From: Takakia lepidozioides
Lineage: Eukaryota; Plantae; Bryophyta
Reading direction: 5' to 3'
Assembly: GCA_030704615.1 (NCBI GenBank)
Contig: CM060733.1
Coordinates: 32,116,001 to 32,180,000 of the forward strand
DNA length: 64,000 nucleotides
Shown here: piece by piece, positions 20,201 through 53,392 of the stretch
Layout of the letters: every line of letters starts with the position of its first letter
Position numbering within the stretch: position 1 is the first letter of the stretch
Notes under the pieces: generated by a model
What the model was told of the DNA's origin: nothing
Database searches by the model: none
What the model saw: the letters and a program-made list of their open reading frames with translations, nothing else
Translations under genes and position numbers: made by a program

Positions 20201-23200
20201 GTTGACGTTGGTAGTAAGACTTACCTTCATAGATAGAATTAATCCGGGTTTTCCAGATATCCTCTAGAAATCCCTTCACACAAGCATCAATCTGCTGTGT
20301 GTGATTTGCCCAGAAACTAGGCCTCAGGAGGGCCTGGGCTTTTGGCTAGCCTCGAGACTTTCAAAGTTGGTAAACAGGGGTACAGGCACAATTCCCTTGA
20401 TAGATTTGAAGAGAGCGTCTCTTTGGTGAGAGAACCCCGGACAGTGTATCAGAAAATGAATACTGTCTTCAGATTGCCCACACAACGGGCAATTGCACTC
20501 TCCCTTTCCTCTCTGCTTCTGTTTGCTGTTCAAAGGTAGGCTTCCTGCGAGTTTAAATTTCAGTCTAGTGCCGAGAGTGGGTAGACCCTTGAGGTCATCC
20601 AAGATGTCCTCCCCCATGTCACTGACTGGAAACAAGTTCAGGGAAGTTTTCTGCCTAACTTCATTTTCATCAGACAATCTCATGGCAACAGACATGGCTT
20701 TGGACACTACAGCCTCTAAGTCAGATTTATCCAGCAGGGTCAAGACTTGCGGATCCAGGTCCAGGTCCTTGAGAATCTCTTCTACTCTCTTCTGCCAGGA
20801 CTTAGCCTGTTTGACAGGGCGGTCCTGTTTCCAAGATATAGAGTCGATTAACTTAGGATATCTGGTGTTGGGCATATGTTGCAGCTGACCCCACCATCTG
20901 ACCTTGAATTCATCTCGTCGGGAGCTTAAGGACGGAATGCCAAACTCACCCCGAACAGCCACATTGGCTGTTTTGGAGCATGCTGACATACACTCCTTAA
21001 GCACCCCCACTTGAATGGATTCTAGAGACTTAGCCTTGTTGGAGTTATCAACCCATATTGCAGATCCGTACTCCAAGGCAGGTCTAATAACGCGACAAAG
21101 CATGGTTTTCTTAACCTCAGAGTTGACCCCTCTGCAGTGGAAAAATTTAGTGAGCCCCAGAGCTTTGCCCTTGCCAGTTTGAACAACTTTCCGGATATGT
21201 GCATCCCAATTACAATTGGAGGAAAACTCAACGCCCAGGTAAGTGTAGGAAGGGAGGACCGGGATCTCTTGGCTACCCCACTGCCACTTAAGATCACTTC
21301 CTCCCTCTCCTCTGTCGTTGAATGCTACCACTGCACATTTGCTGACATTAGCCTCTAGCCCCCAAAGCTCAAAGTATTTCTTCGCGCAATCAATCAACTC
21401 CTGGAGATTGGTTTGAGTCTCCCCTATGCCTGCGAAGTCATCCGCAAACATAAGGGCTGGTATGGTGGTATCACCCACCCTTAACCCAAATCCCTCACTT
21501 TCCACATCCTCGAGGAGTTGATTGATGAAAACATTGAAGAGCAGAGGGGAGAGAGTACATCCTTGAGCTACACCTTGGTCTATGTCATGTCCGTTAACAG
21601 TGACACAGCTTTTGGTGTGAGCATACAAGTTGTGGACAACTCTCCACATCTTTCCCTTGATCCCACAAGACCAGAGATGGAACCATAGGCCCTCTCTCCA
21701 CACTGTGTCATAAGCCTTTTTGACATCCAGGAAAAAAACATAAGTGGGTTTCCCTTCTTTTTTCCTTCTCTGGATAATCTGGCTTACAGTGAAGATATGA
21801 GCCACACAGCCCCTGTTTCGCCGAAAGCCAGCTTGGCCTTCGTGGAAACAACCTCTAGACTCCAGATCAACCTCGAGACGAGTACTTATAACTCTGCAGA
21901 ATGTCTTGCCAACAGCATTGAGGAGCGTGATGCCACGGTAGTTCCCCGGTTCTTCTCTGTCACCCTTCTTGTATAGATTGACAATGACCCCCTGTCGCCA
22001 GCGAAAGGGGATCATTTCAGTCTTCCAGATATGGTTAAAGAGGAGAACTAGGGCCTCTATCATGGGATCGCCACCGTGCTTGATAAGCTCGTTGACAATA
22101 CCATCAGGTCCACCAGCTTTATATCCATTTAAATGTTCAATTGCTTCCACAAACTCAGAAGAACTAATGGGAGCGTTATAAGCCATTGAAATATACTCCA
22201 GTTCATCAGGGCTGTTTTGAATCATAGGAACAGTTTTTCCAACTGTGTCCCTCCATTCAGCAGAAGACCCCTCACTGTTAGACCTAGAAGTTCTGCCAAG
22301 GATACTGTAGTGAGTTTCAAAGGTTTTGACAATGTCAACCGATGAAGTCACCACTGCACCTTTAGTAGTCTTCAGCGCTTGTACTTGCTGACCGTTTTTC
22401 GGCTTGTACAAACGTTGAAGGGCCAACCAGAATTTCTTGTCATTACCACCATGGTGGTTTGAGTTTATTTCACTGTATAACTTGTCCCAGTATAATTTCT
22501 TCTGAGACCTAACAAGCTGATTGATATCTTTACGGAGCTGGTAGTACCTCGCCCACAATTATCTGTTGGTTTTCAAATTGCAGCACTCTTTATAGAGGGC
22601 TCGTCTCTCAGCTATCTTGAGTTTAATCTCATTGGTCCACCAATTAACAGCTCTACCGCAGACAATTAGTTTCCTCCCAATGATTGTCAGCCACGGAGGA
22701 AACGAAACTCTCCCAAGAGTCCACTGCTCTTTCGACTTCATTTCTTGCGTTGTCAGAGCGAGACTGAAGTTCTTGGAGCGATTGGACAAAATGAGGGAGA
22801 GCCTCTTGCAAGGCCTGGACGTACCCAGCCTTGACCTCCTCATTATGGAATTTTTCTATGCGCCACTTCCGAATCGAACGTTTCACAGATCTCTTGGTGT
22901 TTTTGATCTCAGTCCAAACCAGGAAGTGGTCAGAGGTACCAATATCAGTTCTGTCGATCAACACATTGGCACACTTGGGGAACAAATTTTTGTCCATTAT
23001 GATATAGTCCACAATGGAACGTTCCCCAGTTTGGGATTTCTCACGAGTCCACTGCACTTGGTCACCTCTTGTCCTGTTATTCAAGGTCAAAAGCTGAAGC
23101 TCTTCCAGACAGTTAATTAACCGTCTGCCGTTAGAATTCAGCTCGTCCTCACCAAAAGGCCCAATGATATCGTCCTGATGGAGCCCTTTGCCTCTCGAGA

Positions 23201-24667
23201 TGGTACCATTAGCCATGAAATCCAAGCCTAAGCTAGAGCATGTAGTTTTAAAGGACACATCGTCCATCCTGGGATTCACCCCAAAAACTACACATGAAGC
23301 CCTAGATGACAGGAGCTAAAATTTTGATTGTAGTCGCAGGCTATAAGTTTAAGCACAGGAACCAACCCGAGCCCAAGTGCCGAGTATGCTAGACAGAGCA
23401 TACGACTGCCCAATTTGGGCGGAGGGGCTGCCCCCAAGCGGTAGGGGTCCGCTTGTTACCATTCAGAGATCACACTCCAGGGAGTTGCAGGGAATGGCCC
23501 GTGTAGGCATATTCTAAAGAGGGAAAGGCCCCAAGCTTTCCAACTAAATCCAATGCACTACCTTACCTGGAGCAAAGCGCTTCAGGTCGAAACAAACAAG
23601 GACACGAGGTCACAAGGCCGGCCTTTAGTCACAGAGACATTAATGTACTCCCGTATCAAGTCCACCCAATGGCAATAGGCTTCCTAGAGGACAGGGAGAA
23701 TATCATGGAGAAAGAGATATATATGTGCTCAAGGTTGTCCTAGTTTTCCACCAGTGAAGATTATTGTGTGTGTACACTCAAAAGAATTTGGTTGGGTGAT
23801 TTGGATCTGTGCATGGCAGTTTGAGCGTTTCAGACGAATCTTCCATCACTCCACCTATCGTGTGCTGCTTTGCCATACCGAGCGCCAGATATTAAGCAGT
23901 CTTTATGTCAATGAGGTATTACCATTTCAAGATTTATTAGCAGTGATATTGGCTTAGCATTGCATCTCTTGTGTCCTTGCCTCCTCACCCCTTTCCTCCC
24001 ACCTACACCTTACTGGGGTTCTGGTGGATGGCACTTACCAGCATTGCTTCAAACAGAGGATCTGGGTGTGTGGAGCTCGGCCTGGCGAGGAAGGGATTTT
24101 TGAGTTGACCCTTGTGCAGGTGAATGCTTCTTGCATCACTGAGCCCTTGCACCACTGGCCATGCGGGGATAGGGGTATAATATGTTGAAATTTGTCATCT
24201 ATCTCTGTGTACAAAAAATTTCTCTCCATGGCTTCCTGCCCTGCACTCCTCCGTCTTTTTGGGGGAAAGTGGGAAACATCCGTCTCTCTGTGGACGTTAT
24301 AAAGTTACTTTCTCTCTTTCTTTCTTGTTTCTTTCATTCTCTTATCCCATAAGCTCTTTGAGCTTTCTGCACACGTTATAGAGTACCATTTCAATTTCTC
24401 CTGCCCAAACTGGGCGCAGGGTCTATGGCCACAATAATACAGCAAACAACGTATGAGTACATTCTCTTGGGCTCCTATTTCGTATCATTCCGTTGTTTCT
24501 TGCGCATAATTTTTCTAGGTTTTGCCAGAAGCTAAGGTCCATCATTGCTTGCATGTCTCACAGTTTGTCAGTTGCTGCAGAGAGTTGGTGGCAATTGGGA
24601 TGGATATTGGCTGACAGACAGTCTACGGCCTGATGCGAATGGCATAACAGGAGGTATTGCATATTAA
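17224..24667 (+). CDS. Conserved green-plant protein of unknown function, putative plastid transit peptide; 7 exons
   Basis: Exons 17224-17489, 18413-18455, 19208-19300, 19764-19826, 23820-23915, 24042-24119 and 24581-24667 join in frame: DVPDFLPAIW..QLDALQDNDTPYPDHGVEVMYRFAGFDPFKRSEYFGPFFDLGQFERFRRIFHHSTYRVLL..QRVGGNWDGYWLTDSL. Recognised from memory as resembling a conserved plant family. Confidence 0.85.
17605..18128 (-). mobile_element. 5'-truncated LINE family A in intron 1 of the 17.2-24.7 kb gene
   Basis: Contains the zinc knuckle CQLC..HFLIHC and the family A 3' tail. A degenerate TSD (AATGTCCTA) sits at about 17589 and 18128. Confidence 0.85.
20103..23700 (-). mobile_element. Near-full-length LINE family A (partial APE endonuclease, RT, CCHC), frameshifted and internally deleted
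   Basis: ORFs 22653-23279 (NSNGRRL, DYII, SDHFLV), 22559-22843 and 20324-22558 (QGCTLSP, FADD, YLG). A 15-bp TSD TATCATGGAGAAAGA sits at 20088-20102 and 23701-23715. Confidence 0.95.
24280..24465 (+). mobile_element. Adjacent short 3' tails of LINE family B (CATTT) and family A
   Basis: CCCATAAGCTCTTTGAGCTTT...ACCATTTC is followed by CCCAAACTGGGCGC..GGCCAC..GAGTACATTCT. Confidence 0.7.
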
Positions 24668-25531: not shown

Positions 25532-26291
25532 GACCCTGCTGGATAAATCTGACTTAGAGGCTGTAGTGTCCAAAGCCATGTCTGTTGCCAGGAAATTGTC
25601 AGATGAAATGAAATGAAATGGTGCTTTATAACGTCCGCGGGAAGCTCATAGAGCTTATGGGACAAAATGGAAGAAAACATGAGAGGAAACAAAATACAGA
25701 GCCAGAGATAAAACTATTGTTTGAGTGATTGTATGATGAAAATGAAGTTAGGCAGAAAACTTCCGCGAACTTGTTTGCAGTCTGTGACATGGGGGAGGAC
25801 ATCATGGATGACCTCAAGGGTTTACCCACCCTCGGCACTAGACTTTAATTTAAACTCAGTGAGGGAAGCCTACCTTTGAACAGCAACCAGATGGAGAGAG
25901 GAAAGAGGGATTGCAATTGCCCTTCGTGTGAGCAACCTGAAGACAATATTCATTTTCTGATTCATTGTCCTGGGTACTCTCACGAGAGAGACACCCTCTC
26001 CAAATCCATCAAGGGAATTGTGCCTGAACCTCTGTTTACCAACTTTGAAAGTCTCGAACCTGAGCCAAAAGCCCAGGCACTTTTGGGGCCTAGCTATTGG
26101 GCAAACCACACACAGCATTGATGCTTGTGTGAAGGGATTTCTAGAGGATATCTGGAAAGCTGGATTAATAGTCTGTTCCTTCCGGCGTCAGCCCCTCAAA
26201 GGTAGTTTCTGTCCCTTTGTGTTCAGCTCAAACTGAGCGCGGGGTCAATGGCCACAAGGCTACGGCAAACAACGTCTTATGAGTACATTCT
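25532..26291 (+). mobile_element. 5'-truncated LINE family A interrupted by a family B tail (about 25604-25725, - strand)
   Basis: Family A sequence is split at ATTGTC.GATGAAA, which is duplicated either side of a (GAAAT)3..AAGCTCATAGAGCTT insert. The element ends in ATGAGTACATTCT. Confidence 0.85.
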
Positions 26292-27255
26292 CTTTCCGAA
26301 GGCAATGCAGGTGTTCAATTACCTATACCAGGCGAGTCGTCACAATAACCCCAGCATCTTCTTCCGTAATCAGACAATCAACATACACCTTTCATTACTT
26401 AGCTCCGCCAATTACATCAACAAGAGCCTGTAAATCGTAGACACGATACGTCGTGAATCCTAAACATTTTCTTGCGGGTATTTAACACTGCACGGCAAAT
26501 GGAACTTGCCTGATAAGCTCACTTCAGAGCAGCCCGTGTGCCGCAAGCTAGCTGATCCGAGGGGTATGATCCCCAAAGAAGCTTTCATAGTGCGGGTTTG
26601 CATTGACAGTGACGGAGAACGGATGAAAGAAGGAATGGAAGCGACCAGGCTTGAATTCCACAAGACATGCTCATTATTTATGGATGATTTGCTATTGTCT
26701 ATCCACAGTCTGTGTTGAGAGTACACACCTGTATGGATCTGTAGAGTGGAATGAAGATGGGGACAAATAGAAACTATTGTTCTCGGAGAATGCGTGCTCA
26801 ATATTAACTGTAATTGATCATTTCCTCATGAAACTGGGATTGCTTGCAAGCACTTGGATCCAGACAACGGTAAAGCGGGGAAGAATGTGTAATTCTTTGC
26901 AACTTTTGCTCGATGTTAGGAGGTGAGAGTCGATTTTGTTCTGTTTGTTACGAAGAAATTGCAGAAGATTCCAAGTTTCGAACGAGAGTTTGAAATTTTG
27001 TTTCTGATTTTTATTCCTCGAGTTGCTTACTCACATATTTCTGATGTATAGCACCAATTGTGCATTCTGAGTTGAAATGGAGGTTAGGAGATGGAGTTGC
27101 AACAGACATTACGTAGGAGATGAACGCTGAGACAACTGGAGTGTTATTAGAATTGTCCTCTCCGTTTGGGACGCATCCTCTGTACAGAACCGACGGCTTC
27201 TGTTTGCCTGCACACATTTGTAAAGTTACATGATTGACAAGGAAAAGCAGTCCAG

Positions 27256-30200
27256 ATGGCCGGTTCATGGAGTCAAAATGAGAAAAAAGATGTTGAAATA
27301 GCCTCCGGTTCATGGAACCAAGATGAGGACAGGGAGCACCGAGCAGGGCCAATCAGAGCTTCCGAAGTGCATTATTTTACAGAAAAGCTGCGTGAATGGC
27401 ATGATCGTCCTAATGCCACCTTCTACTTACCTGGACCGAGTCGAAGAAGGAGATCAAGTTCGGATGCAGAACATCGAGTGTCCAATCCAGGCCTGAACCA
27501 ACTAGTTCCAGGAAGCTCCGAGGGAAGTTTGAGAAAGAGCTGGGATAAGCCTACCAAAGGGATCAATTCAGACTTCACGAGCCATTCTTTTGAGAGAGCT
27601 GTCACTGGTCTCAAACAGAGGTTGCAACCAATGGGGAAGGATGATTTAATGGACGTGATTATGAATTTGGCCAAAAAGCTGGAAGACCTCGGCTATTCTA
27701 TGGAAGATCAAGCATTCCTACAACCAGTAAGCATAGATTCTGTACGAGATAGTGTAACGTGTGATATGTGGAGCCACAACCTACAGAACTCACAAGATGT
27801 TGTGTCTTAAAGAAATGAACCCTTTGCACAGTAGTCTACTTGGGTTATAGGAAGACTCTGTTTGATAGAAGCAGAAGGGCTTTCTGTTCTTCTCCACACA
27901 AATCTCTTTAATGGTGATACGTTCTATCAATAAGTTTCTATGTCTTTGCCAATAGTTGTAAATCAAGTAGGTCAGTCCCTAGACCAGGCGCGCACTGCAT
28001 ATTACTTTGCACAGATATCATTAGTAGCCTGATGCTTGTGCATTTGAAAGCCTCATCAGTGGATTCGTAGGCAGCAAAGGAGTGTTTGATTTCACACTGA
28101 TCCATCCAATTGAGCTGAAGGGCACCCAGCAAGTATCTTCCTCTCAAGGACTGAAGGAGATTGACAAGATTTGCTGACCTTAAATGCATCCTAAGACAGA
28201 TAAGGTTTTGAGGAGTTATGCCTGTGGATCATTTCAAGACAGCACATGACATATCAGTTGGTTCTGTTTCTCTGTAGCTCTAGCCTCATCTTGAAATTGT
28301 AGGTCATCTTTATGGTGGGGGAGTCCCGCCCATATTCCGGAGTCTCAGGTCTTGCTGTTAGGTGCTGATGATGAAGATGCCTTCTAAATCAAGTGGACCC
28401 AAGGCAGCTCCAGCCACAGGCATTGAAAGGCTTCTCAAGGATGGCCTCCTGGCTTTCCTGCTGAAACTCAACAAGCACATTCCTCCCAATTCACCGCAGG
28501 TACTGGCCAAACTGCACAGCTTTCTTGGGCATCTCAAAGCTGTCATATTCAATCAGCTTCGTTTATTGACTCAAACTATTTAATCAAGTTCGTAATGTGA
28601 GGCTCAAATGCCTTGGAGCAGCACCTGAACCTCCTCGTGGAATCTACTGCAGGTAGTCAAATTTAAGGACGTAAGTTTCACTGCTCAAATAGTAGGGGCA
28701 AAACATGGCTACGAGACGGTGGGATCACTATGTCTCAAGTGCTTACTACCCTGCTTTGCAGAAGGAAAAGCCACACAAAAGTTTTCAGTGCTAGAGAACT
28801 GTTCGGGCTATTTAATGCCTGGTTCAATGACCCTTGTGTGTGGTCCTCCTGGATGTGGTGAGGACTGAAACTCATGTATGCCTCTTGCCTTGTGAGATCA
28901 CTTTGCTTGTGTCTGCTCTGCTTATGCATGACTTTGAGATTCATCTGTTGTCTCCTTGCTTGCGTGTGGACCTTTTACACCTCTATTAGGTTGTCTTCGA
29001 AAGGAACTTTCCACGCTTTTAATGCTGCACTTCTGAGCCTCTATTTATGTATTCCAGGAAAGAGCAGTTTGCACAAGGCATTGGCTGGAAGGCTACTGGT
29101 GGGCAAGAACATGCACCTCAGTGGTAAAGTGACTTACAATGGAAAAGGTTTTGAGGATCTCCAAGTGCGGCGTTTGGCATCCTATATTGCACAGACCGAC
29201 AGGCATTTCCCCACACTCACTGTCCGGGAAACTTGCGAGTTTGCATATGCTTGTACCAGTGCTTTTAAGGAGGCAGTCCTTGGAATTGGTGGCGAGGCTG
29301 GTATTGTGAGTTCCTTCAATCTTTCGGGCTTAATATATTCATACTTAAGAGGAGGGCAATGTTCATCTCAAACAGAATCCGTTGCTCTCACTACCCGGCT
29401 TATGAAGTGTTCTGGCTTTCAGTGACCTGTGAGGACAAAAAACACCAGAAACACTGACAAAATGCTGAAAGAGGGTTTGTATTTCTTTGCAGATGGAGAC
29501 CGAACTTGGGGGAGGGAATTTGCCTTTGGAGCTGACACTACATTTGCTTGGATTGCGTGCTGTGGCTGACACAATGGTTGGAAATGCATCAGTACGTGGA
29601 GTAAGTGGAGGGGAGCGACATAGAGTTACGACTGCGGAAATGGTCTCAGGCATGTGTGTGCATCCATCTGTTCAAACTTGTTGTCAAAGGATGTAATGTT
29701 TGGTGGATGCTTCAACACAATCTTAGGCACCAAAATACCTGCTCTAGTGTATCGCCATAGCATCCTAAGAACCTGACCTTAACAGGCTTGATTACAGTAG
29801 GTACATCATTAGACTGTTTCAAATTGCCTGGTTGAAGACAATTGTGCTGACAAGGTATACTACAGAAAGTCTTTCCCTATATGGATTGAAAATTCATCTT
29901 TATGCCTGGCAGGCACATTTCTTGTCTATTTCCTTGACGAAATCAGCACGGGACTTGACAGCTCTGCTACATACGACATTGTTTCTGCATTTCGCACATT
30001 CGCGAGGATAAGACGATACACATGCCTGTTCTCCTTACTTCAGCCTTCTCCTGAAGTATTTGACCTTTTTGATAGGTAACATGTCCTTAGTGGTTTTTGC
30101 TCCCTTTGGATGTGTGTGCCAATAAACAATCGCAAGCATGTTCCAAGCATGTGTGATCCTATTTTTATCATTTTTATCATTGATAGTAGAGCTTTCATTC

Positions 30201-33200
30201 ATCATACAAGAACAGTAGGTATGGGGCACTGCAATGAAGCTCTTCAGCAGCAGTTGCCCTCTGAAAAGCCCTTAGACCTGATATGTTTTAGTGGGATACC
30301 TACTACAAAATGAAAGCACATTGAGCTGCGACGGACGTGGTACCAGGTCAGTCATGTCACTAACATTTTTAGACTGTTCCTAAGTCAGATTTTGGTCTGT
30401 CCTCTCTTATAGGATCATTGTCTTGAATGAAGGGCGCATCATCTATCAGGGACCGCGTGAAGATGTTCTCCCATATTTCGCTGAACTTGGGTAAAACTAA
30501 ACTACTCTGGGAAATCTTGAAGGGTAGGTAGTTTCGTAGGTTCAGTTTGGTTCATTTGCTCTTCTTGTCTGTCCCCTCCTCATCCTCTATAACAGCAATA
30601 ATATGTAAATGATTGCTATAGATTGCTGTCATGGAAACTAAGCCAAGGACTGGGATATGTTCATCTCAGACCTTACTAAGTTTGCTGCAGATTGCAGGTA
30701 TGTGAAACCAAAGCATGTGGATGTGGCAGACTTTCTTCAGGAAGTTACCACAGAAGAGGGCGTGCGATTTTTGCAGCGTGGTTTCAGAGAACTAACAAGC
30801 GATGATTTTGTGATCGCATACACCGACTCCGATATGCACAGAGACGTACTGCGTGTTGTTGATAGCCCAGAGGTATCAAATAGGCCAGAATATCTTCTAA
30901 TGTTTTGCTTCTGGAATAGTCAGTATCACCAATGCACTTAGAGCACTAGTTTTGAGTCACGGAATAGGTTGGTTGATTGGCTTACTTCCATTACATTGGC
31001 ACTGTTGCAAAACCTCAAAGTATGGGAGCACCAGTCTGCCTAGTATCATCTTCCCTCTCAGTGTCGCTCCATGATTGATTGTATGCTACTTGAAAATATT
31101 GTTCTGGTATCTGGTTTCTTTGAAAATTTGACAGACATACTTAAACTGCTGCTTTGGAGACCTCCATTAGTAGTTATGGGTAGTTGGTGTCCTAGGTAGT
31201 AACCCTACCTCTGTTTGCAGAACGTCCATGAGCTTTGGTTGGAAGCAGCAAAACCTCTAGGTTTGAAATTAATGGACAGACCTGCCAAGGCAGGTAAGTC
31301 TGCGCATTGCCATGACACTATGATATGCCTCATCTGTTTCATTGCTTTTCAGAATTCATACGCCATCTTTTTCATGTTTGCTGGTATTTCTTCATTTCGG
31401 GTGAACCCCACTCTGTCACCAGTGTTTGGGGGACCCAGTAGTCCACCAGCAAGGTGCATCCGTGTTTGGGCTTGTATGTAACACCTTATCTGTTTGTTGT
31501 TTGAACAACCGGACGGAATATGATGGTTTGCTGTTTTATGCACCTTCAAGCCTGTAGTACACCCTGTTAGAAAACTAGACCTGTCCTCTCTCAAGAGATT
31601 TGGACAGGGAGCTTCTATTCACAAGCAGTAGTACAAAACCCTTGACAGCTGAATGATACAGGAAGTAGCTAGTACTCACAAGATGAGAAAACTGGAGCCT
31701 GGAAGCTGCCTTGCACCCTACTACAAAAGACTGTAGATGCTGGCATAAATTCTCTGGAACCTTCTGGTAGGAATCATCCTTATCCAAAAAACCCTAGCAG
31801 AGCCCTAGCTAACAGTCCCAATGGTTAACTAAATCTGAGCTGACTTTCAACACACCTAATGGGTTTGAAGAGGAGGCTTCAAATTAAGTGGCTGTGTCAG
31901 AAATACAGTGTCTTTCGAACTTCCTTGTCAGTTTACTCGTCCTCATCCATCGGCATTGCCTTTTGAGCAGGTCAAAAAAGAGGGATAGTAGTTACTGAAG
32001 TTGAAGCCTCAGGAACAGCAGCTGTCCCTGACATTCTACAGACAACACAAGTAAAAGAGGGAGACTGCATAACAGGAATTGTGAACAGCAGTGGCAGACT
32101 TGAATACATAACAGACAGCAATCAAAACGCCGCAGACATAGTGAACAAAGTTCAAGAGGTCCCTGGAAAAGTGCGCTTGCAGCTGGAGCGGCCTCTAGAA
32201 AAGGTAAGCCTGCGTCAACTACCTGCATTACCTCTTACATGTACTTGGGAAATGTTCAATATACTTAAAGGAGAAAAGAACACACTATACATAAATAAGT
32301 GGGGTTCTAGTTGCAACAGTTTGAGACATGCCCAAGAGGAATTTCATGGCGTAGGGACAAGAGACTGTTTTTCCTGTGTTGTGTCTGAGGATGGTTGCAT
32401 TAGATGGCAAATGCAGCCACCTGACTTGAGTGGTTAGTGGTCTGGGTGTCTCTGAAGAGCATTCCAACCCAACAGGCCCATAAAGAAAAGGCTGACTCCT
32501 AGTTACTGACAGCGAGTAAGGTGACAAATGGATTTGACATACAGATCAAGTTGTTTTATATTAGTTGCTGTTGAAGTGGGGGGTGCCTAACAACCTCACA
32601 TGTAAGTTGCTCCTCATTTCTGAATTTAGTAAAATCCAATGAATCTAGCAACACATCTTCAACAACGTTTTGTTTCAACCTTGACATATTTCCTTGGGAT
32701 AGAATTGAAATTTATTCTCCCGTTGTCTCTTTTACTGTCTGTTGGTTGATGTTGTGCCATTGTTCACTATAGGTCTTTTGTTTCTTTTTCAATAGAGAAT
32801 TTGCTGTTACCTTGGGTAGTGTCTTTTTTGCAATTGATAAGCCTGGAGTTCTCCTCCAAGCTTACATAGATACATGTTGCCATGATGCAGGAAGGTGCAT
32901 CAGCTGCAAGGGTTTTTGAACAGGAGTTTGTCCAAGAGTGGTGGCCTTCAACAAAAACTGTGTTCAGACGGCAGGCCACCTTGGCAATTCGTAATAAGAG
33001 CTTTGTCTATGCTCGTATGATGCAGGTGCAGTCATCCTTCAACTTGGAAGGCTGTCAAAGGGTCATTCAGCTAGATGGTTAAACCATTGCTTCTGTTGAT
33101 TGTAAGGAGGAGGTTAGCTTTGGGATCTTTGTCGTTGCCCAATACCTTGGCTACTTAGATACTGTGGGGATCATATAATGGCTTGCTGTGCCATGCTTGC

Positions 33201-36200
33201 GAGGTTAGACTTTGGTTATATAGTGGTCTATGTTCTTGTTTCCGCTTTCTTAAATGTGGCTGATAAATCCGCTTTCGTCCTGATTGTACATTAGAGGTTG
33301 TCGTGGAACCAATGATCTTATGTCGATAAGGTTTACTGCGGAGAATGTGATCTAACAAGTGGATGTGCAGCTTATTATCTTAGGAATATTCACCGGGACT
33401 TTATTCTATCAAGTGAAAAATACTACTGATCGTTCTGATATGGATTTACGCAAGTCTCTTGCTTTCCTTGCAGTCATGACCCTATCATTAAACACTGTCT
33501 CTCAAATACCTGTTCAAATAGACGAGCGTAAGGTGAAGTTCTGGCAAATTTGAAGTAGGCTTGATTAGATAAAGTTTTCAAGTTTGATGATTGTTTGTTG
33601 GTTTGGTTTTTCTCGTTGCATTGTGAGAGGACAGTGCTCTGATGAAGTTGCTATCTTTAAACTTTTTTCTGGTTGTGTGACTGATAGCACTTGACAAATT
33701 GGATCATGATAAGACCTCACTCTATCCCATGGGCTCTTGTGGCCCTCTGTGGATGTTATGAAGTTTCTTTCCGCGGACGTTATAAAGCACCATTTCATTT
33801 CATTTCATTTCTATGCAGTACCATTTCATTTCATTGCTTTTGGGCTGCTTTTTGGCTCTGGTTTTGTCTCCTCTCTCTTGGTTTTTTCCATTTTGTCCCA
33901 TAAGCTCTTTCAGCTTTCCGCAGACGTTATGAAGTACCATTTCGTTTCATTTCATTTCCTTTATTTCTATGACACACATTTCAAATATGATGTTTCCGTG
34001 CTGCATGTTTCCCAGTCAAGCCGTCCTGCAATAACAGAGCATAACTCAGTTCCTTTTTCATGTAGGTATTTGAGAAACAATATGCTGCAAGGTTCTTTCG
34101 ACCCAACGCCTATGTTCTTGCCTGCACCCTCAGCCAACTCCCCTTCACAATGATAGAGGTACAGAACCTTGTTATGCAGTACAATGCGATTAGACACTTA
34201 AGTACTGCGACAAAGCCACATCATAGCTGTAAAAGCATGTAGCAATTCACTGCTTTCTGTCAGTGAATAGACACTACATTGACTTTTTGCGACACTGTTA
34301 TACCTGCAAGTATGGTATAGAAGGATGATGTACGAAGTACCGGGATTTTGTTTGTTGGGATACATTTGTAAGGGACTTGGGAGGAACCTTTCTGCCAGCT
34401 CACTGAGCTGCTCCTTGCAGCCTCATTTTGGCTCGTGAAGGATTTGTAGAGTTGTTTGTCCTGTACATACTTTGACTTGTTCCCATTTTGCTGGCTAGTT
34501 TTTTTAATCTCCATTATGCAAAAGTCAAGAAAAACTCTGGAGGAGAGAAACTTTGGCCTAAGGTTGTTGTGCTTTACTAAATGCTTTAGGTTGAAATGCA
34601 GATGATGATATATACTCCTCTTATATACTGGCTAACAGGGCTAAGCCCTTCCCAGCATGGAGCTCATTATTTTATATATATACTGGTGGTCTTTGTTGAG
34701 GCAATCACTTTTGCAGCATTTGTGCGAGTTAGCACTTCTTTTTCCAGTACGAAGGAAGCAGCAAGTGGCGTAGCTGGTTCGATTCTCAGATCTGAGCCAC
34801 ACATGAACTCAGATTAGTCGTGCTTTATGTGTCTGACCCTCTTCCTGGAGCATCATTCTTACCCCCCACCAACCAATCTTCACTTAGTCGTGCCATCCAT
34901 ATATGACACAGCAGTCAGTTGACAATCCTGTGAAGCTGGCTGAAAATGATTGGAGTAAACCTTGTGTGTGTGCATGTTCTTCTTTTCTGGGGTGGCTTAC
35001 TAGGTTGGGCCATGTGTATTAATTTTGAGTCTGCATATCTAGAGAGAGGAGGGAGAGAAGGAAAGAGTCAGGAGTACATCATGCTCTAGGTGAGGCCCAA
35101 AAGGGGAATAACCATGACACAAAGAAAGGCATCCAATATGAGGTTCTGACGACTTCTTGTACCTCCTGCAGGTCTATTTATTCTCTTCTTTTTGTTATTT
35201 GCTGGTTTTTTGGTTACCAAAAACAAGGTGCCTGATTGGTGGATTTGGGTCTACTATCTCAGCCCCCTGCAATGGGGTGTCACAGCAATAGTTTGCAACG
35301 AGTTTCTCTCTAGTAGATATGATGAAGTAAGTGACCCCAACTGACAATTTGCCGCAGCCCCATTACTACTGACCCTCAGGGAATCACAGACACCTGGAGG
35401 TCAACTGTTTGTTGAGACCTTTTCTGACCAACAGTGCATCTCCCATCAACGACAGGAACCTGAGTTCCCCAGTCTCTCTGCCTTCGCCAGATGTAAATGA
35501 CAACTATATAGTCCTTCATGACTCTTCTTGGCCTGATGTTATCAAGATGAGAAGTGAAAGCAGTATAAGAGAATTCAAGAAGTTGATAGTTGGGAAGCTG
35601 GCTGCGAATTTTTCTGTTTAGGAGCATTGAACCCACATCAAAGAAATCTAACCTTCCATGTATTTTGATTTATAGAGCTTTGGCCTGACGTTTGCTTGCC
35701 TTTTGGTCTTTCTATGACAAATTCTCCTGTGGTATCTATTGTGTAGGCTTGCAGTGATAGCATCAGTTACTGCATAGGTAAAGAACGGATGAGAGTTGGG
35801 CAAGCATATCTGGACCTCTACAACCTGCCCACCACATTCTTCCGAGGTGTATGGGTGCCTATCATTGTCCTTTGCAGCTACTACTGCGCGCTGACCTATT
35901 TATGTTTCTACACTGTTGCCAATATAAGGCATGATGAGGTATGCTGTGCAATTTTATAACTATAGTTATCCTTAGGACATTGATGAGATGTGGCATGCTC
36001 TAATCAATTACCTGCACATATATTTACAGAGAATTTGTGAATGGGAAAGTAGCTTCATGCTGTGTACAGCATCTGTGGCAAGTGTCAACTGATAAAATAC
36101 TTTTTATATTTTGTATCTTTACAGGTCTGTGCCACAAATAGAACTCTCAACTGTCTGGAATTTTTCATGGAGTGTGAGCTAATGTATTACCTGGTTCCTA

Positions 36201-39200
36201 TACCTCACACCCTATCCCCTCTTCCTCCTGTGGGGATTTGCTGGTTTGGTATTGGTTTGTGCCAGGTGAAGCTGCCACCTGCTGGTCGGTTGCAACCTTC
36301 AAAGTCAGTTGGCAAAATTCCTCCAAAGGTTCCAGAGGTGTCTATAAGAGGATCCCTGGCGGCCAAAGAAGTTGGAATGATAGCAGGAGGTCGTGCTGCT
36401 TCTGTTGCAGTGACTGAAATATCTTCAATTAGGTTTGAGCCCATGATTTTATCCTTCCACCAGCTAACCTATGAGGTAATGGTTCTTTCAATAACCATGT
36501 GAGATCTTCATTCTTTATTTAAGATGCCGGTTTTCGTGCAGTAGTTTGCAGTAGCTCAAACTGGGTGAAGTAGACAGTTGATGTGATCATGAATCCACCT
36601 GAAGTTGCACCTAAAGTTCAAAGAAGACCTTGAATCAATAGAGGAGTTAAGGGAAACATGGGATTGTGACCAGCAGGTGCCGCCTTATTGTTTATAGATT
36701 TAAGTAGTTCAACTGTTTCTGCTCTTGATGCCTGGTTCCATGTTAACAAGCAGCTTAAAACACTGTATACACCCAACTCAGATTGGTGTTGTTAGTGACT
36801 ATCACCAGCCTTTCAGTGGGAACCACCAGAATATAATCCAAAGACCGAGCAGCGAGCACAAATATTGAGCATTGAACTTCCAGTAGAGTGTCCACTTGTG
36901 TGCACTAGGCCATGGTGTTGATGCCTGGACACAGACCATAAAAGCTTCTGAGAATGCTGGGTGGGGACTTCAAGCAACTGCTCTTTTTTTTCCATCAAGT
37001 GATTTTGTTCAGACACATGTGTTATTAATGAACCCAGCAAGCTCACCTCATTTCAGATTGATTTCTTGGTTTTGTTGGCTAGGTGGTTATACCTGGGTGT
37101 AAAGATCCACGGAAGTTGCTTTCCAACGTTTCAGGGTTTGCCAAGCCTCACACTATGACTGCCCTCATGGGGAGCAGTGGTGCTGGGAAGACAACCCTAC
37201 TTGATGTTCTGGCTGGCCGCAAAACCATAGGAAGAATGACCGGTGATATTCTTACAAATGGCTACCCTAAAGTACAGGCGAGATTTGCTCGCATTTCTGG
37301 GTGAGTGTGGGGCAGGTGTGGGTAATGGAAAACTATATGTGACGTAAATCCAGTCCACCTCCTATTTGCATTGTGAAAGATCTGCTGGATTAACCGTAGC
37401 TAGTCTGGATGCGGAACACAAGTGGATTTTGATAGAGTAAAATATCACCCCATGTCCCTTGTGCACTATTGAGTCCGTGGTTCATTTGGTGTAAGAAAAG
37501 TGTTGACTTCCTCTTGGGGCCAGATATGTGGAGCAGAACGACATTCATACACCTTTTATTACAGTCAAGGAGTCTCTGGAATTTAGTGGTGCTCTTCGCC
37601 TTCCAACAGGCACCTCTCCTGGTAGCCGGAAAAATTTCATCAAAGAGGTAAAGTCCGTCAATGGGTACACAACCAGTTTAGGCTGTCTTTCAAAGCAGTA
37701 AATTTCCTGAGATAATATCACTTCTGCCAGAGGTCCACATGCTATTATTGTGACTTATAGTGCTTCTCATTCTTAGCTTTTGTATGATCGAGTCATCTAT
37801 ACAAAGATATTGCGACACTGGCCTTAGGTTGGCTTTGAAGTTGTTCATGTCTTGGGATTCAGCTTCATGAAGGACCACTCCTTGCCAGGATACTTAACCT
37901 TCAATTCCAAACAGCTCAGGTGATGGACTTGCTGGAGTTGAGCGACATTCCCAACAAACTGGTAGGCGCCATTGGAGATGGAGGACTCTCAGTGGAGGAA
38001 GCAAAGCGTCTCACCATCGGTGTTGAACTCGTATGTGAATTTTCAACTAAAAGACATGCTTCAGTCCTGGCTACATGAAGTGTTTGTTCAGATTGTCAAA
38101 TGTATCTTTGTCCAACGTACTCTAGTGCGTCTGGTCAATAGTTAGAGTGGTCCCCGTTCTGCTGTCAGCACAGTTCAAAGAGGATGTGCTTGTGGCCACA
38201 AGACTGCAGTCAGCAGTACAGTCTAATGAGTGCATTCCTGCTCCAAAGTTACTAGTTCCTCAAGTCTGCAGTAGTGGGATGGTTCAGGTGGCAAACCCCA
38301 GTATTTTATTTCTCGATGAGCCAACTAGTGGGCTGGACAGCCGAGCCGCACAAATTGTGATGCGCGGTGTTGTTAATATAGTCAGATCAGGGCGTAGCGT
38401 CATCTGCACAATACATCAGCCCAGCCGACGCCTATTCTTGTATTTTGATCAACTGTTGCTTTTGAAACGTGGGGGCGAAACTGTATATTTTGGACCAACT
38501 GGAGAAGAGGCACAAGACCTTTTGGTAAGGCTGACATAGTCAACTTGTTAAAGTATCAGGCTCAACTTCCATGCAATATGTTGCAAAATCTTGTCATCTT
38601 TGAGATCTCTCAAACCTTCTTGCACATCTTCTTTTTAATATGTCAAATCTGCTGGTAAAGTCGCTCCAAGTATTTTCATCTTCTGGCATTATAAGGTACA
38701 GAAAAGGGCTCGAACTAAGACTGGCATGCTTCTTTCAGAAATACTTTCATTCGCTTCCTGGAGTATTGAAGTGTCCAGCACATCAGAACCCAGCATCGTA
38801 CATGCTGGAGATTATTGGAGCTGGGATTGGACATACTTCTCAACGTGATTTTGCACTGGATTATCAAACAAGTGCTCTGGCCCAGAGGAACTGTATGTCC
38901 AGTCCCCAACCTGTCTATTCAGATTTCGAGGTTAACAATCTCGTAGTCCTGTGCCAGTTTCTCATTGCACATGACTAGTTCTGCCATACACGTTTGGGAC
39001 CTGTGGAAACCACCAGTTTCCTCTTTGCACATGGACTAGTTATGCTCTACACATTTAAACCTGTGGCAACTGCTACTGGTGCTCTGAGATTACCCTTGTC
39101 TTTAGAGTCTGTCAAGACCCACAACAATATGATTACTACATAAACCCCAGCATGTGAATGACGCACAGCAAGCTCGTAGAGGGTAGGAGCTCTCAAGAGT

Positions 39201-42200
39201 TCTTCACTCATGTCAATCTTCTGTGCTTGATGCTGAATATCGCATAAGAAAGTGTTTTGGTGCTACATCCTTCGACACTGTTCAAAGTGTTAGTGTGATT
39301 CTACTTCTAACTTGCAGGCTGGCACACATTGAATGGTAGTATCCAATCTCTGGATGTTGACTTCCAGTAGGCACCCTTTTGACCAAGGAGAAGGTCTTGA
39401 AGTGAAGTTAGAGACTCTAGTGGGTACCATGTGCTTATGCCATCGCTGTACACACTGCATGCTTGTGACTCTTTGATGCAGTGGAGCAACTGGATTCCTT
39501 CAAGTTTGGTAGATGGAAGATAGGCAAAGAGCCACTGGCAGAAGGATATGCTGCCTCATGGCTGCTCATGTGTCGAGTTGTTGTTACGCGCCAGTACAAA
39601 ACCTATTGGCGGAACACTTCATACAGGTCAAGCCCTTCTCACAATCTTCTACTATGTGATCTTCCCCCAATTCATATCTTACATCACATCCAACAAGTAG
39701 AATATATTTGACACAGTAATAGTTATTACGATTTGTACCCTTGTGGATAGGAGTCGGACTGACCTTCTGATTCACGTCTGTGAAAGGTTCCGTTTGGCAG
39801 ACACCAGGGTATGGTTCAGAAACTCCAAGCCTTCTGCTCCTGAGTCCTACACCTCAGACATGGAGTCGTGGTGGTTTGCTTCTTGGTGGATGTGGTGTGT
39901 TTCAAATCCGTCACTGAACTTGTTGGCACATTGGGGGTGCAGTTTTGGTCGAATGATTCTGGTCATCATTCTTGGTTTGATCCAAGGGAGCACTTTTTGG
40001 CAGGTGTATATTTTTTCTCTTTGTTATGTAATAAAAGGGAAGAGGAATCTACCATATACATTTTCACTCTTCTGACCCATTAGCCACAATTACTGAACTA
40101 GACAATTCATTAACTTCAGACTGCCTACCAAAGTCGATGAAAGGGTTCTACTCGACTTGTAGCATGAATTTTCCTAAGCTCATTGCCTAGTAGTCAAGTG
40201 AACTGTAAATCATGACGTGATGTAGGCAACCCGCCACAGGCCAACAGTAAAGGTTTAGAAATCCAGGTTCATTGCTTCACTCCTGCCATCTACAACCCCA
40301 TGTTAATGCCCTGTGTGCCTTTATGACAGATAAAGTACAACAATACTCCAGGATTGGTGTCACGAACGGGCCTAGTCTACATATCAGTGGTGATGGTGGC
40401 TATATCAAATGCAAATAACGTCATTCCACAGGTGCCAGCAGTCCTTTAGGATTCAATGCATTTGATTAGTACTAGAACATTTCTGCCCAAGTTGTCTTTT
40501 CACCAGCTGGTGGGACCAGCGTTTGCTGAGTTAGTCCTCATAACAGTGCTATTTTGATTAGCCACTGCCATATTGCTGTCTTGGCCCAGCTGCCAACAAA
40601 ATTTGAGTTCTGCTGGGGTCTCGATGGGCCTTATTCTGTCTGGAATCAGGCACATGATTGTCTCCCCCTGTGGTTTTTCTAGATGGTCCGAGGGTCTGTG
40701 CCACTTTCTTTAGAAGTAGAAATAAATATTATTTTGTGCAGGTCAACGCAGAGCGTGTGGTCTACTATCGTGAACGTGCATCCAACATGTATTCTGTGTT
40801 TTTGTACAACCTCGCCTGGACCCTGGCTGAGGTAATATAACTCTTGAAGAGACGACTGTCTTGATGTAACTAACAAAGTCGCTACTAATTTCAGGTGTGT
40901 CTTGCAACATTTCTTGATAGATGCATTCCTGAGTTTCACCACTAGAAAACAAACTGGAAAGCTTTTTCCTTTCTCTCTTGCGATGATAGAATCTTGAGGC
41001 CAAATTACCTTTCAGCATCCTTATCTCCTTCCCTCCTGAGGGCATTGGGGCGGTTCAGGGTGGGTTCCCACAACCTACGGATAGAGACTGGCAGATGGGA
41101 AACCTGCAACGGGGAGACTGCCTATGTCCAGCTTGCATAGGGCGCAGCCAGGAAATTGAAACTGAAGAACACTTCTTCTTCTACTGCCCTCTATACTACG
41201 AGATCCGTGGGAGATTCCACTGTTTATTCAGTGGAACCCAATCTCTCACTGAAGTCTTCCACTATGAGGATCAAAAATGATTGGCAGCCTACCTGCATGA
41301 GGCCTTCACCCTTAGACAATCACTAGAACATTAGTTCTTATTCTTGGGTTCTGATTTTGTTTCCTCTCTCATGTTTTCTTCCATTTTGTCCCATAAGCTC
41401 TATGAGCTTTCCGCGGACGTTATAAAGCACCATTTCATTTCATTTCATTTCTCTTCTATTGCCCTCTATACTACGAGATCTGCGGGAGATTCCACTGTCT
41501 ATTCCGCGGAACTCACATTGAGGACAACTTTGAATATTTAGCTGTTACTGCGAGAGGATTGGATATTTTGTACGAGAGAATAGTCCAGGGGGGAGAAAGG
41601 TAGTCTCTGTGCTGATTCAAGTTGGTGCAAACACCCCTTTACAAAGGTAGGATATATTGACAAAAAGTGTGGATGGAAGCGTACATATATACATACACAA
41701 AACTCAAAGAACTAGTGAGGGAATGTGAGGGAACAAGACAGAATTTTATGATGACCCAAAAGAAATGAAATGAAATGAAGTGGTACTTTATAACATCCGC
41801 GGAAAGCTCAAAGAGCTTATGGGACAAAATGGAAAAAAAAACATGGAAGAAAGACTACGACGTCCACAGGGACAAAGTAGGACACCAAGAAACAACTTCA
41901 GAAAAAACCTCAACGACTCCCGAAGACAGTCTTCATGCAGATCGACTGCCAGGCACTTTTGCTGCTCAAAGCTAGAGAATTAAAATTATCACGTGTTTGT
42001 GCAATGACAGATCCCATATCTGTGCGTTTCAACTCTTATCTTCTGTTCCATATGCTTCAGTATGGCTGGAGTGGCCACGAGTTCGGCCAAAGCATTTTTC
42101 CAGTTTTGGTTTGTTTTCTTAGAGTACGCTGCAACGATCACATTCTTTGGCATCTTCTTGGCGATGTTGACTCCTAATGCACAGGTGAGTGTTCCTTGAG

Positions 42201-43900
42201 CTTAGCATGTTTTTATGGAAAACAAAGAAAATCCATGGTCAAGCTTAATCCCACTCTATAGCTACCAGAATTTGCGAATTGACAAGGGGATCTTGGAGAA
42301 AGTGCTAAGGGTGGGTTACAGCATTGATTATATGGCCTTAACAGAGCAATCCGTTGCCTTGAGAGATTGCAAAGTCAGATGTCCGAGACCTGGATTACTC
42401 TTGAAGGCCTCCACCTTGGGGAACTGTGCATTTGTAGTTTTGAGCTGCTTGTTGGGAACCCACGTTCGTTTTTTTTATCCTTCGTTCTTTTCTCCCATCG
42501 GCTCTCCGAGCTTTCTATGCAAGTTACACAGTTTCTTTTATTCTTTCTTTCGTTCTTTAATTTTCTAAGCACAGATGAATATTGGATGTACACCCGATTG
42601 GAGTACTAGGTTTCAGAAAATGGAAAGTCACATGCCAGATGTACATGTGTAGTTTAATGAAGGTAACTTCCCATCTGGGGCACATTGCAAAAATATTTGC
42701 ATGTGTGACACTGCATGCCTGATTAATAGTATTGATACACATCTCATCTGTAACATCGCGAGTCCATTGAGCATGGTAGTTTTGGGATCCTTGGCAGGTC
42801 GCAACAATTATCATTCCCATTGTTGTCAACTTCTGGTTAGTACTATCTGCAGCCCTTGAATGTCATGCTCTATTATGTGCTTGGTGAAAAGTTGTATTAT
42901 TCTTTTGGTAATCAGTACATTTGGAAGAAAAGTGTTATGGGTTACTTGCCAGTTTATAACTGTGTGCACCCTGGGCTCCTCCTTATGGGCACGTTTGTAT
43001 TGCACACTCGGAAAGTCCAAAGGATGGGGGGGGCGGGGTAATAGAGGTTTGAGTTGCACCCACGCATTGTTGTATTTAGGCATGGTCATAAGTGCTCCCA
43101 AACTTGTGTCAAAATGATCATGATCATGTGTGAAATGCAATCCAAAGGATGGAAGAGAGACTTTGTAATGAGGTACAGAAATGAGCTAACAGTTATGCAC
43201 TTGAAGTTTCGCAACTAGCCTTGTGAACTTGACATACCTGGCCTCTCATTAGGCCCTTTTTAGGCCATATTTCGTGCAAATTAGTCATTTATTCAGATCC
43301 TTGGTGTTCTACTTGTTACATGGGCCCTGGGGGCACTCTGTGGACGCAATGAAGGTCCTTTCTTTTTTAAGTACCATTTCAATTCTGTCTTGAGGAACAT
43401 GTGAGAGATCTCAATCATACCTGCAGAAGTTTGGCAGCAACCTTCGTTCGAACAACGCCAATTAGAAGACTTCTCATGCAAGATCAATCTGTGACTCTAC
43501 CACTAGATTGTAATACTCTCCTCCTCTTGTTGGTGTGAACAGGAACATGACCTCAGGGTTTATGATCGCAAAGTCGAAAATCCCACAGTTTTGGATATGG
43601 CTATATTGGGTCAACCCCACCCAATATACCATCAACACCCTCGTCTCCATGGCGTTCTACTGTGACACTCACAACCCTCCCTGTAACACATGCACCATGG
43701 ACCCTAGTAGCTGCCCTGGCTGCACGTGTCCACGGGTCCAAGATGAAGGTAACTTATTGGCTTGGACTATTATCAGTACAAGTATGTCCTTGGACTATAA
43801 TGACCGTTTCCAAAATATGGGCTTGTTGTTTGGCTTCATTGTCTTCTTTATGATAGCTGGTGCAGTAGCTCTCAGATTCATGAAGTATGATAAGAGGTGA
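27256..43900 (+). CDS. Full-size ABCG/PDR (pleiotropic drug resistance) transporter, about 30 exons, with an inserted PDZ-like domain
   Basis: NBD1 shows Walker A GPPGCGKS, signature VSGGE and [13 protein letters not shown]1 exons lie at about 32.9-35.9 kb. NBD2 shows [30 protein letters not shown] and CTIHQPS. TMD2 shows YYRER and WLYWVNP, with the stop at 43898-43900. Exon phases are compatible where checked. Confidence 0.93.
33720..33958 (+). mobile_element. Tandem 3' tails of LINE family B ending in (CATTT)n
   Basis: Contains repeated TTCCGC.GACGTTAT.AAG.ACCATTTC units and the CCCATAAGCTC...AGCTTT stem-loop. Confidence 0.8.
41050..41515 (+). mobile_element. 3' fragment of a second LINE family (B): zinc-knuckle remnant, 3' UTR and (CATTT)4 tail, then a short duplicate of its own coding end
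   Basis: Encodes [22 protein letters not shown] at 41095-41280. The tail is at 41430-41450. Sequence 41451-41515 repeats about 41175-41240. Confidence 0.8.
41762..41845 (-). mobile_element. Short LINE family B 3' tail
   Basis: (GAAAT)3..CCGCGGAAAGCTCAAAGAGCTTATGGGACAAAATGG. Confidence 0.8.
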
Positions 43901-52400: not shown

Positions 52401-53392
52401 CTCCTTCATCAAAGCAGACCCCCTTATAATTCCCTTGTTGAACAATGATGATGTTGTTGGGGGAGTTAGTGCAGGTTGTTCATCACAACATGAAATGTGA
52501 CATTTTCTCATTAAACTAGATTCATTGTTACCTTATGTTCACAAAAATTTATGCTCACTTACGATAGAATGTACTCATAAGACGTTATTTGCCGTAGCCT
52601 TGTGGCCATTGACCCTGCGCCCAGTTTGAGCGGAAACCAAAGGGACAGAACCTACCTCTGTCAGGGGCTGACGTTGGTAGTAATAAGACTTACCTTGATA
52701 CATAGAATTGATCCGGGTTTTCCAGATATCCTCTAGAAATCCCTTCACACAGCAAAATCTGCTGTGTGCAATTTGCCCAAAAACTAGGCCTCAGAAGGGC
52801 CTGGGCTTTTGGCTCAGCCTCGAGACTTACAAAGTTGGTAAACAGAGGTACAGGCACAATTCCCTTGATAGATTTGAAGAGAGCGTCTCTTTGGTGAGAG
52901 AACCCCGGACAGTGAATCAGAAAATGAATACTGTCTTCAGGTTGCCCACACATCGGGCAATTGCACTCTCCCTTTCCTCTCTGCTTCTGTTTGCTGTTCA
53001 AAGGTAGGCTTCCTGCCCTGAGTTTAAATTTCAGTATAGTGCCGAGAGTGGGTAGACCTGTGAGGTCATCCAAGATGTCCTCCCCCATGTCACAGACTGG
53101 AAACAAGTTCAGGGAAGTTTTCTGCCTAACTTCTCACTTACGATAGAGCAGATCAGAGAGTTGGACATCTCAGGTGGATTCCTATCCAACAACAAAACTC
53201 CTAGTATGTTTCAAGGTGCATTCATTTTTGGGGTACTGAAATTGCATGTTGACTGGTTTGTTGGAGGGGTCCACAGACACTGATAACACGGCCACCCTCA
53301 CTCAATTTCTGATGTCGAAAATGTTGGACTCGCCGGAAGAGGAGACAACGTATGCAAATGCTTATGCTGAGGAAATTTGTGTTAACGCTTAA
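49474..53392 (+). CDS. FSH1/OVCA2-family serine hydrolase (alpha/beta fold); 7 exons
   Basis: Exons at about 49474-49602, 50010-50102, 50524-50622, 51732-51773, 51950-52079, 52285-52386 and 53277-53392 give LHGFRTSG, GPFDGLVGFSQGA (nucleophile Ser), GEKD (Asp) and GHTVP (His). Confidence 0.92.
50926..50970 (-). mobile_element. Short LINE family A 3' tail
   Basis: AGTGTACTGATAAGACATTGTTTGCAGTAGCCTTGTGGCCAT. Confidence 0.75.
52569..53132 (-). mobile_element. 5'-truncated LINE family A in the last FSH1 intron
   Basis: ORF 52690-53106 contains CPMC..HFLIHC. A 15-bp TSD CTCACTTACGATAGA sits at 52554-52568 and 53133-53147. Confidence 0.92.

Follow-up and report, generated by a model that had tools for sequence, protein, structure and literature searches.

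The window analysed here, a stretch of 64,000 nucleotides (positions 32,116,001 to 32,180,000 of contig CM060733.1 of Takakia lepidozioides), contains a multi-exon gene for a full-size ABC transporter of the ABCG/pleiotropic drug resistance (PDR) type, in which two exons encode an additional domain between the first nucleotide-binding domain (NBD1) and the first transmembrane domain (TMD1). It is highly likely that these two exons encode a constitutive domain of ~100 residues with the PDZ fold and its canonical strand order, located in the cytosolic linker between NBD1 and TMD1. The combined proposition that the exons are real, that they encode a PDZ fold and that the resulting architecture is old and conserved is held with equally strong confidence. 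The element was first noticed in a sequence-only reading of the window. Its exon coordinates, translation, length of 306 nt, phase-0 flanks and GTAAG donors are all reproduced by reading of the sequence and by spliced contigs, and its placement of the insert between NBD1 and TMD1 of a full-size ABCG/PDR-type transporter proved exact. The features that define the insert and its immediate surroundings are the following.

30698–30872, plus strand: last exon before the insert, with its conserved in-frame start at 30698 and its end in phase 0.
31221–31293, plus strand: PDZ exon 1 (73 nt), encoding beta1 (ELWLEA), the carboxylate-binding loop K-P-L-G-L and beta2.
31294–31970, plus strand: phase-1 intron within the domain, in the beta2-beta3 loop, with GT..AG ends.
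31971–32203, plus strand: PDZ exon 2 (233 nt), encoding beta3 (GIVVTEV), the alphaA region, beta4, beta5 (LEYI), alphaB and beta6 (KVRLQLERP).
32891–33025, plus strand: first exon after the insert, starting in phase 0 and leading into TMD1.

The two exons form a cassette of 73 + 233 = 306 nt, equivalent to 102 residues, and PDZ exon 2 ends with a complete codon. The acceptor sequences are cag/aac at 31220/31221 and gcag/gtc at 31970/31971, and the donors are gtaagt at 31294 and gtaagc at 32204. Frame arithmetic indicates that both outer introns are in phase 0 and that the inner intron is in phase 1, where it splits a Gly codon (G/GT). The preceding exon closes on a full codon (...VVDSPE) and the exon at 32891 opens on one. 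The exon borders of the cassette are also the domain borders. Splicing of the cassette is documented in run X1 by a 3268-nt contig with the joints 30872/31221, 31293/31971 and 32203/32891 and with 0–1 mismatches per exon. This contig lacks eight consecutive introns, including 30873–31220, 31294–31970 and 32204–32890, all with GT..AG ends, and it must therefore originate from spliced RNA. The joint 31293/31971 is also found in a contig of a second study (X2). Furthermore, contigs from two other species (L001 and L002) have the same two-exon structure, indicating that the intron position within the domain is conserved.

The suggestion of the sequence-only reading that the module may be skippable is upheld only in part. 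Because 306 nt lie between phase-0 introns, the frame is kept when both exons are skipped, and relatives that lack the PDZ domain work with a short linker, both of which are compatible with an alternative module that yields pumps with and without PDZ. However, the proposed comparison of inclusion and skipping returned only inclusion joints: the skipping joint 30872/32891 is present in none of the contigs of X1 or X2, although a rare isoform could escape contigs. The domain is also present in every member of the clade described below, and conservation across this clade therefore favours a constitutive domain over a skippable one. Consequently, an alternative cassette is judged quite improbable. 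The cassette introns have no repeat copies elsewhere in the window. Contigs from both runs also map to 31555–31948, within the intron that splits the domain, with a depth of 10–15 in X1, and one X2 contig in this region skips 31731–31749. This region is single-copy in the window and could be a retained intron or a separate transcript.

The fold of the insert has been probed using sequence profiles, structure prediction and fold searches. All searches were run exon by exon, and the fold was modelled on the insert of the Calypogeia orthologue. A profile of 24 aligned inserts (A2) was compared with the sequences of the PDB, and the top match is the PDZ domain of PDLIM2 (E 4.7e-4), followed by further PDLIM2 entries and DegP PDZ2. 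In the PDLIM2 match, profile positions 12–106 lie in register on residues 7–86 of the 89-residue PDZ domain, with P-l-G on PWGF, vvveeV on IMVTKV, kaGDkitav on RPGDIIVAI and vrlqLer on LRLQLDR. An AlphaFold2 model was built from a 24-row alignment (A3, first row Calypogeia P0029:522-634), in which the two window exons are separate rows with 76% and 49% identity. The model has a predicted local distance difference test score (pLDDT) of 79.1 and a predicted template modelling score (pTM) of 0.73, and its elements follow the order b1-b2-b3-b4-b5-aB-b6. The assignment of the PDZ fold to the window segment itself is made because its homology to the modelled orthologue is clear.

Fold searches with this model lead consistently to PDZ domains. 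All 40 matches listed (ranks 1–50) in the Foldseek comparison with the PDB are PDZ domains, including Erbin, MUPP1, PSD-95 and DLG1; the best is Erbin (E 4.7e-4), and template modelling (TM) scores reach 0.77 among the matches listed. VIA-align places the model closest to LNX2 PDZ2 (Z 13.1, 1.8 Å over 90/95 residues), and all 50 rows are PDZ domains with Z of at least 11.6. A shape search of the ESM Atlas returned DLG-type and green-lineage PDZ proteins (TM 0.68–0.75). Additionally, language-model features assign both the 77-residue window exon (0.91) and the Riccia insert (0.83) to PDZ clusters, and one open reading frame (ORF) fragment related to the exon bears the source name of a CtpA/Prc-type protease. 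The PDZ fold named in the sequence-only reading is thus borne out by the AlphaFold model of an orthologue insert, the fold searches, the PDB profile and the language-model features. A phmmer search of the PDB with the 77-residue exon alone gave only a chance-level match to PDH E1-beta, which was rejected, and the flanking exons alone gave nothing useful against the PDB.

When compared with canonical, non-permuted PDZ domains (LNX2 PDZ2, 2vwr; Erbin, 2h3l; PDLIM2, 3pdv), the insert is alike in its length of ~95–100 residues, its strand order and its P-L-G-L loop, and it likewise has a GD that opens beta4 and a beta6 that is hydrophobic. It differs in that identity is only 12–27%, in that it scores below the Pfam thresholds, in that alphaA is not a predicted helix, and in its longer beta2-beta3 and beta5-alphaB loops. 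Canonical PDZ domains are also parts of scaffolds, whereas the insert is embedded in a transporter.

Several results count against the assignment of the fold. Pfam makes no PDZ call, and neither the window exons nor their neighbours have a match; the thresholds of PF00595, PF13180 and PF17820 are not reached, the best result being E 0.056 in 1 of 23 members. The modelled sequence is the insert of the Calypogeia orthologue rather than the joined window sequence. In addition, AlphaFold2 with a 13-row alignment (four full-length rows) gave a pLDDT of 37, which rose after divergent algal, fern and clade B rows had joined the alignment, and alphaA is not helical in the model, as DSSP finds no helix at model residues 39–59. 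Accordingly, the resemblance to PDZ might be due to chance or modelling, with the insert adopting another small, beta-rich fold; the negative Pfam result, the shallow alignment of 24 rows and the ability of AlphaFold2 to drift towards common folds are consistent with this explanation. In contrast, four partly independent lines lead to PDZ (the profile against PDB sequences; Foldseek, VIA-align and the Atlas; the language-model features; and the CtpA/Prc-type source name), and the PDZ match spans the whole domain in order. An artefact is consequently held to be extremely improbable, and a PDZ fold remains the preferred assignment.

To examine the distribution of the insert, the 77-residue PDZ exon was compared with the full set of 1.84 billion representative proteins. 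The informative matches are of two kinds. One is a 1500-residue ABC transporter of the liverwort Riccia fluitans, in which residues 583–655 are 54% identical to the exon. The other comprises short ORF fragments from unannotated assemblies, which reach up to 67% identity and end in ...LQLERPL(E/Q)K followed by V, as expected for read-through into the GT donor. A word search restricted to the region added proteins of Riccia sorocarpa, Marchantia polymorpha (AXG93_3426s1070) and Calypogeia fissa, and these three, like the R. fluitans protein, are colinear with the part of the window gene between 28.4 and 43.9 kb. Further carriers emerged when the complete Riccia protein served as the query and local anchoring and hidden Markov model (HMM) scans were then applied. 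The same anchors flank the insert in Spirogloea, five Closterium proteins, Chlorokybus, Cymbomonas and the fern Adiantum nelumboides, as well as in Marchantia MpABCG27, its M. paleacea orthologue, one EukProt sequence and one Logan sequence. Overall, at least 12 other species have annotated proteins in which the encoded PDZ sequence is conserved. The insert is missing from the relatives in oomycetes, brown algae and rice and from the plant-type PDR-like relatives, in which the anchors are only 15–50 residues apart. Bacterial multi-stretch matches (P0002, P0008 and P0013-15) were dropped as unrelated repeat domains that look compositional, and a word-index search with the 77-residue exon yielded no candidates among eligible proteins of 42–135 residues.

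A maximum-likelihood tree of 30 proteins, from which a 60% fill filter dropped the insert columns, places the 14 carriers on one side of a branch with a Shimodaira-Hasegawa-like approximate likelihood ratio test (SH-aLRT) support of 100. The carriers are split by a branch with support of 100 from the plant-type PDR-like sequences, of which the tree includes two. They include two subclades: clade A, to which the window gene belongs and which holds the Spirogloea and Closterium proteins and the liverwort orthologues of the window gene, and clade B, which holds MpABCG27, the Marchantia paleacea and Adiantum nelumboides proteins and others. Marchantia has one orthologue in each clade. Since the carriers are monophyletic with this support, the insert would have arisen once and be very old, and we infer that it was acquired before the split of the chlorophyte and streptophyte green algae. 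The sequence-only reading proposed an exon-shuffled module, but a recent exon-shuffled add-on or a module special to this gene is not supported by this distribution, in which the insert belongs to an old clade with a probable single origin whose members include Cymbomonas and Chlorokybus at one end and liverworts and a fern at the other. Judged from these comparisons, the insert is the apparent defining feature of an old ABCG subfamily found in streptophyte algae, liverworts, a fern and the bryophyte-like genome of the window.

The host gene was reconstructed from stop-free stretches, Pfam matches for each exon stretch, and tblastn with the Riccia, Marchantia and Calypogeia orthologues. Its ends are approximate, the start being taken as the ATG of MAGSWSQ and the stop as that following FMKYDKR. 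The remaining features of the gene are listed here.

27256–43897, plus strand: full-size ABCG/PDR-type transporter gene, multi-exon, with the order NBD1, PDZ, TMD1, NBD2, TMD2.
28857–29056, plus strand: intron that splits the NBD1 Walker A motif GPPGCG/KSS, which was read across exons.
29601–29959, plus strand: NBD1 signature VSGGERHRV (from 29601) and NBD1 Walker motif (from 29921), read by exon.
30689–30697, plus strand: tandem acceptors ctgcAG/attgcAG/g, 7 nt apart, giving an exon start at 30691 or 30698.
33356–33550, plus strand: Pfam match to ABC2_membrane, on the exon following 32891–33025.
37170–38422, plus strand: NBD2 motifs, all intact, namely a Walker motif (37170), the signature LSVEEAKRL (37986), a Walker motif (38303) and the H-loop CTIHQP (38405).

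Pfam matches on the exon stretches occur in the order ABC_tran, ABC2_membrane, ABC_tran, ABC2_membrane, which is the layout of a full-size ABCG/PDR transporter, and the colinear orthologue P0005 likewise contains each of the two domains twice. In tblastn, the orthologues from Riccia, Marchantia and Calypogeia align in the same order along the window gene between 28365 and 43897. Exon-by-exon reading indicates that Walker A, Walker B and the signature are kept in both nucleotide-binding domains, together with the H-loop of NBD2. Retention of all catalytic motifs predicts that the window gene encodes an active pump, as judged by motif content. The C-terminus of the window protein (...FMKYDKR) directly follows the last membrane helix and is short and basic. 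The gene shares with yeast Pdr5, plant ABCG/PDR proteins (AtABCG36) and oomycete PDRs the reverse NBD-TMD-NBD-TMD order, the ABC_tran and ABC2_membrane domains, the PDR-type motifs and a short, basic C-terminus; these proteins differ from it in having 15–50 linker residues where the window gene has PDZ. No member of subclade A (P0005 and P0027-P0030) has PDR_assoc (PF08370) in its precomputed Pfam list; this family is listed for a few other carriers, namely two Closterium proteins (P0034 and P0035) and P0038, and ABC_trans_N (PF14510) for no carrier. On the tree and domain content, the host is apparently a full-size ABCG of the PDR type that lies outside the canonical land-plant PDR clade (ABCG29–43 type). 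The intron at 29650–29912 has GC..AG ends (tctcag/gcatgt ... ctggcag/gcac), and its removal is confirmed by a spliced contig in which the join is in frame (VSG/TFLVYFLDE).

One feature of the transcript evidence argues against a fully productive gene. The sole assembled transcript of the locus, the X1 contig, uses the upstream, out-of-frame acceptor of the tandem pair in a joint from 30489/90 to 30690/91, such that its exon starts at 30691. According to frame arithmetic, use of the acceptor at 30690/30691 shifts the conserved frame and leads to a stop at 30800–30802, before the PDZ exons. The downstream AG (30696–30697), with an exon start at 30698, gives ELG/YVKPKH, as in all orthologues, and the remaining junctions of the X1 contig all preserve the conserved frame. 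The tandem acceptors may represent unproductive splicing or a weakened gene copy. It has been considered that the window copy is unproductive or partly so, either through regulation by unproductive splicing or as a nascent pseudogene, in which case function would rest on paralogues elsewhere in the genome. The inclusion of 30690–30697 in the X1 contig, with the ensuing stop, is consistent with this explanation. However, the ~25 conserved exons all have open frames and follow the order of the orthologues, the catalytic motifs are all intact, and the in-frame AG at 30696–30697 is present; furthermore, contigs keep one variant and drop others, so the in-frame joint may also be used. An unproductive copy is consequently judged to be improbable, and a productive gene with a constitutive PDZ domain is preferred.

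The function of the PDZ domain can be approached through its loop, its groove and its pattern of conservation. The window sequence has the X-Phi-G-Phi loop with a preceding basic residue, as K-P-L-G-L at 31251–31265, and the loop motif is kept across the range from Chlorokybus to liverworts. Of the 14 aligned carriers, 12 have it in the form [KRQP]P[LWA]G, and both Closterium rows have lost it (PPID). In the proposed mechanism, the PDZ domain would sit at the membrane-proximal cytosolic face, adjoining NBD1, where it would dock either an acidic lipid or a partner protein, the latter through its C-terminal tail or an internal motif. Docking would in turn set the location or the activity of the pump, and the domain would thus be a built-in counterpart of the free PDZ adaptors that serve animal ABC transporters. 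This docking function is predicted only tentatively, because the Phi-G-Phi loop (P-L-G-L) is kept and because of the behaviour of PDZ domains elsewhere. In keeping with the sequence-only reading, we infer that the domain could act as a peptide-binding regulator or scaffold. The fuller proposal, in which an ancient green-lineage ABCG subfamily carries a working PDZ domain that docks tails or acidic lipids and thereby sets polar location or gates the ATPase, is conceivable but is to be regarded as somewhat more doubtful. The protein's own C-terminus was considered as a ligand and rejected, since the KYDKR tail directly follows the last membrane helix and is also found in PDRs that lack PDZ.

Other aspects of the conservation pattern are less favourable to a peptide-binding role. 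The loop Gly is absent from the Closterium proteins (P0031-P0035), in which PPID replaces PLG, and beta5 and alphaB of these proteins are separated by a long low-complexity expansion rich in Gly and Glu; the loss of the loop and the expansion therefore weaken the case for a conserved peptide groove. Moreover, the strongest conservation is in beta6 (RLQLERP) rather than in the groove. These findings raise the question of whether the PDZ domain is instead a structural or allosteric part of the linker that has no peptide ligand from outside and influences, in cis, either the NBD dimer or the coupling to the membrane domain. Such a role would account for the peak of conservation in beta6 and the exit from the domain (VRLQLERP) and for retention of the domain in Closterium despite the loss of the loop Gly and the low-complexity expansion. 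It would also fit clade B (P0038, P0039, P0041, P0042 and P0044), which keeps the PDZ insert and has no recognisable signature or Walker B motifs, the domain being retained in MpABCG27 and Adiantum despite degenerate ATPase motifs. In contrast, the conservation of the Phi-G-Phi loop and of the preceding basic residue from Chlorokybus to liverworts is as expected for a working carboxylate-binding loop. A purely structural role in cis is accordingly viewed as unlikely, though well worth weighing, and docking of a partner is the provisional preference.

The closest functional parallels are found in animals. ABC exporters are usually regulated via disordered linkers or by separate adaptor proteins. 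The PDZK1/NHERF adaptors bind ABCC-type transporters, and a pairing of PDZK1 with ABCG2 is also found in the literature. These systems are like the window gene in that an ABC exporter is functionally coupled to a PDZ module on the cytosolic side of the membrane; they differ in that the PDZ domain is on a separate protein and the transporter supplies the C-terminal ligand, whereas the PDZ domain of the window gene is part of the transporter chain. If the proposed function is correct, the arrangement would be the mirror image of that in animals, where PDZ adaptors bind the tail of the transporter, and a folded PDZ domain inside an ABCG pump would be a new means of linking a transporter with its partners or with the identity of the membrane. 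Within the subfamily, the nearest comparison is clade B (MpABCG27, M. paleacea and Adiantum nelumboides), which has the same insert in the same place and one inferred origin; clade B has no recognisable signature and Walker B motifs, whereas the window gene, as a member of clade A, keeps both.

The claim of the sequence-only reading that no PDR/ABCG protein with an internal PDZ domain is known stands provisionally. No description of a PDZ domain inside an ABCG/PDR transporter was found in the full-text literature, the coverage of which is incomplete, Pfam has no such annotation, and a paper on a Marchantia ABCG protein makes no mention of a PDZ architecture. Because Pfam misses the domain, the architecture is invisible in the Pfam-based annotations examined, which amounts to a systematic annotation gap. 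The results identify a clade of full-size ABCG proteins that is distinct from the well-studied plant PDRs. Should the subfamily turn out to be absent from seed plants, this could explain its obscurity. The question of function is directly testable in Marchantia, which has an orthologue in each clade.

The remaining sequence of the window, which is eukaryotic DNA with a G+C content of ~44%, contains several further elements; Rfam and tRNA scans of the window gave no matches. A short, dispersed intronic repeat at 33767–33958 has copies at 41344–41452, 41758–41838, 25603–25704 and 24309–24392 and includes within it a direct duplication of 45 bp. Contigs from both runs accumulate on this repeat, with a summed depth of up to ~7,700 and many loose ends, and it is therefore taken to be a high-copy, transcribed element. 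Repeated ORF fragments are found on both strands at ~8300–9600, 9880–10180, 20270–20890, 25850–26430 and 52580–53140, and share the motifs WPQGYGKQRLMS and CNCP.CGQPEDSIHFLIHCPG.SH(Q/E)RD. These fragments resemble degenerate remains of a single interspersed element, which may be the zinc-knuckle end of a retroelement. Finally, the minus strand at 55385–58453 has long open stretches (for example, 55385–56254 and 56759–57553) with heptad-like charged repeats, which suggests a gene for a large coiled-coil protein.

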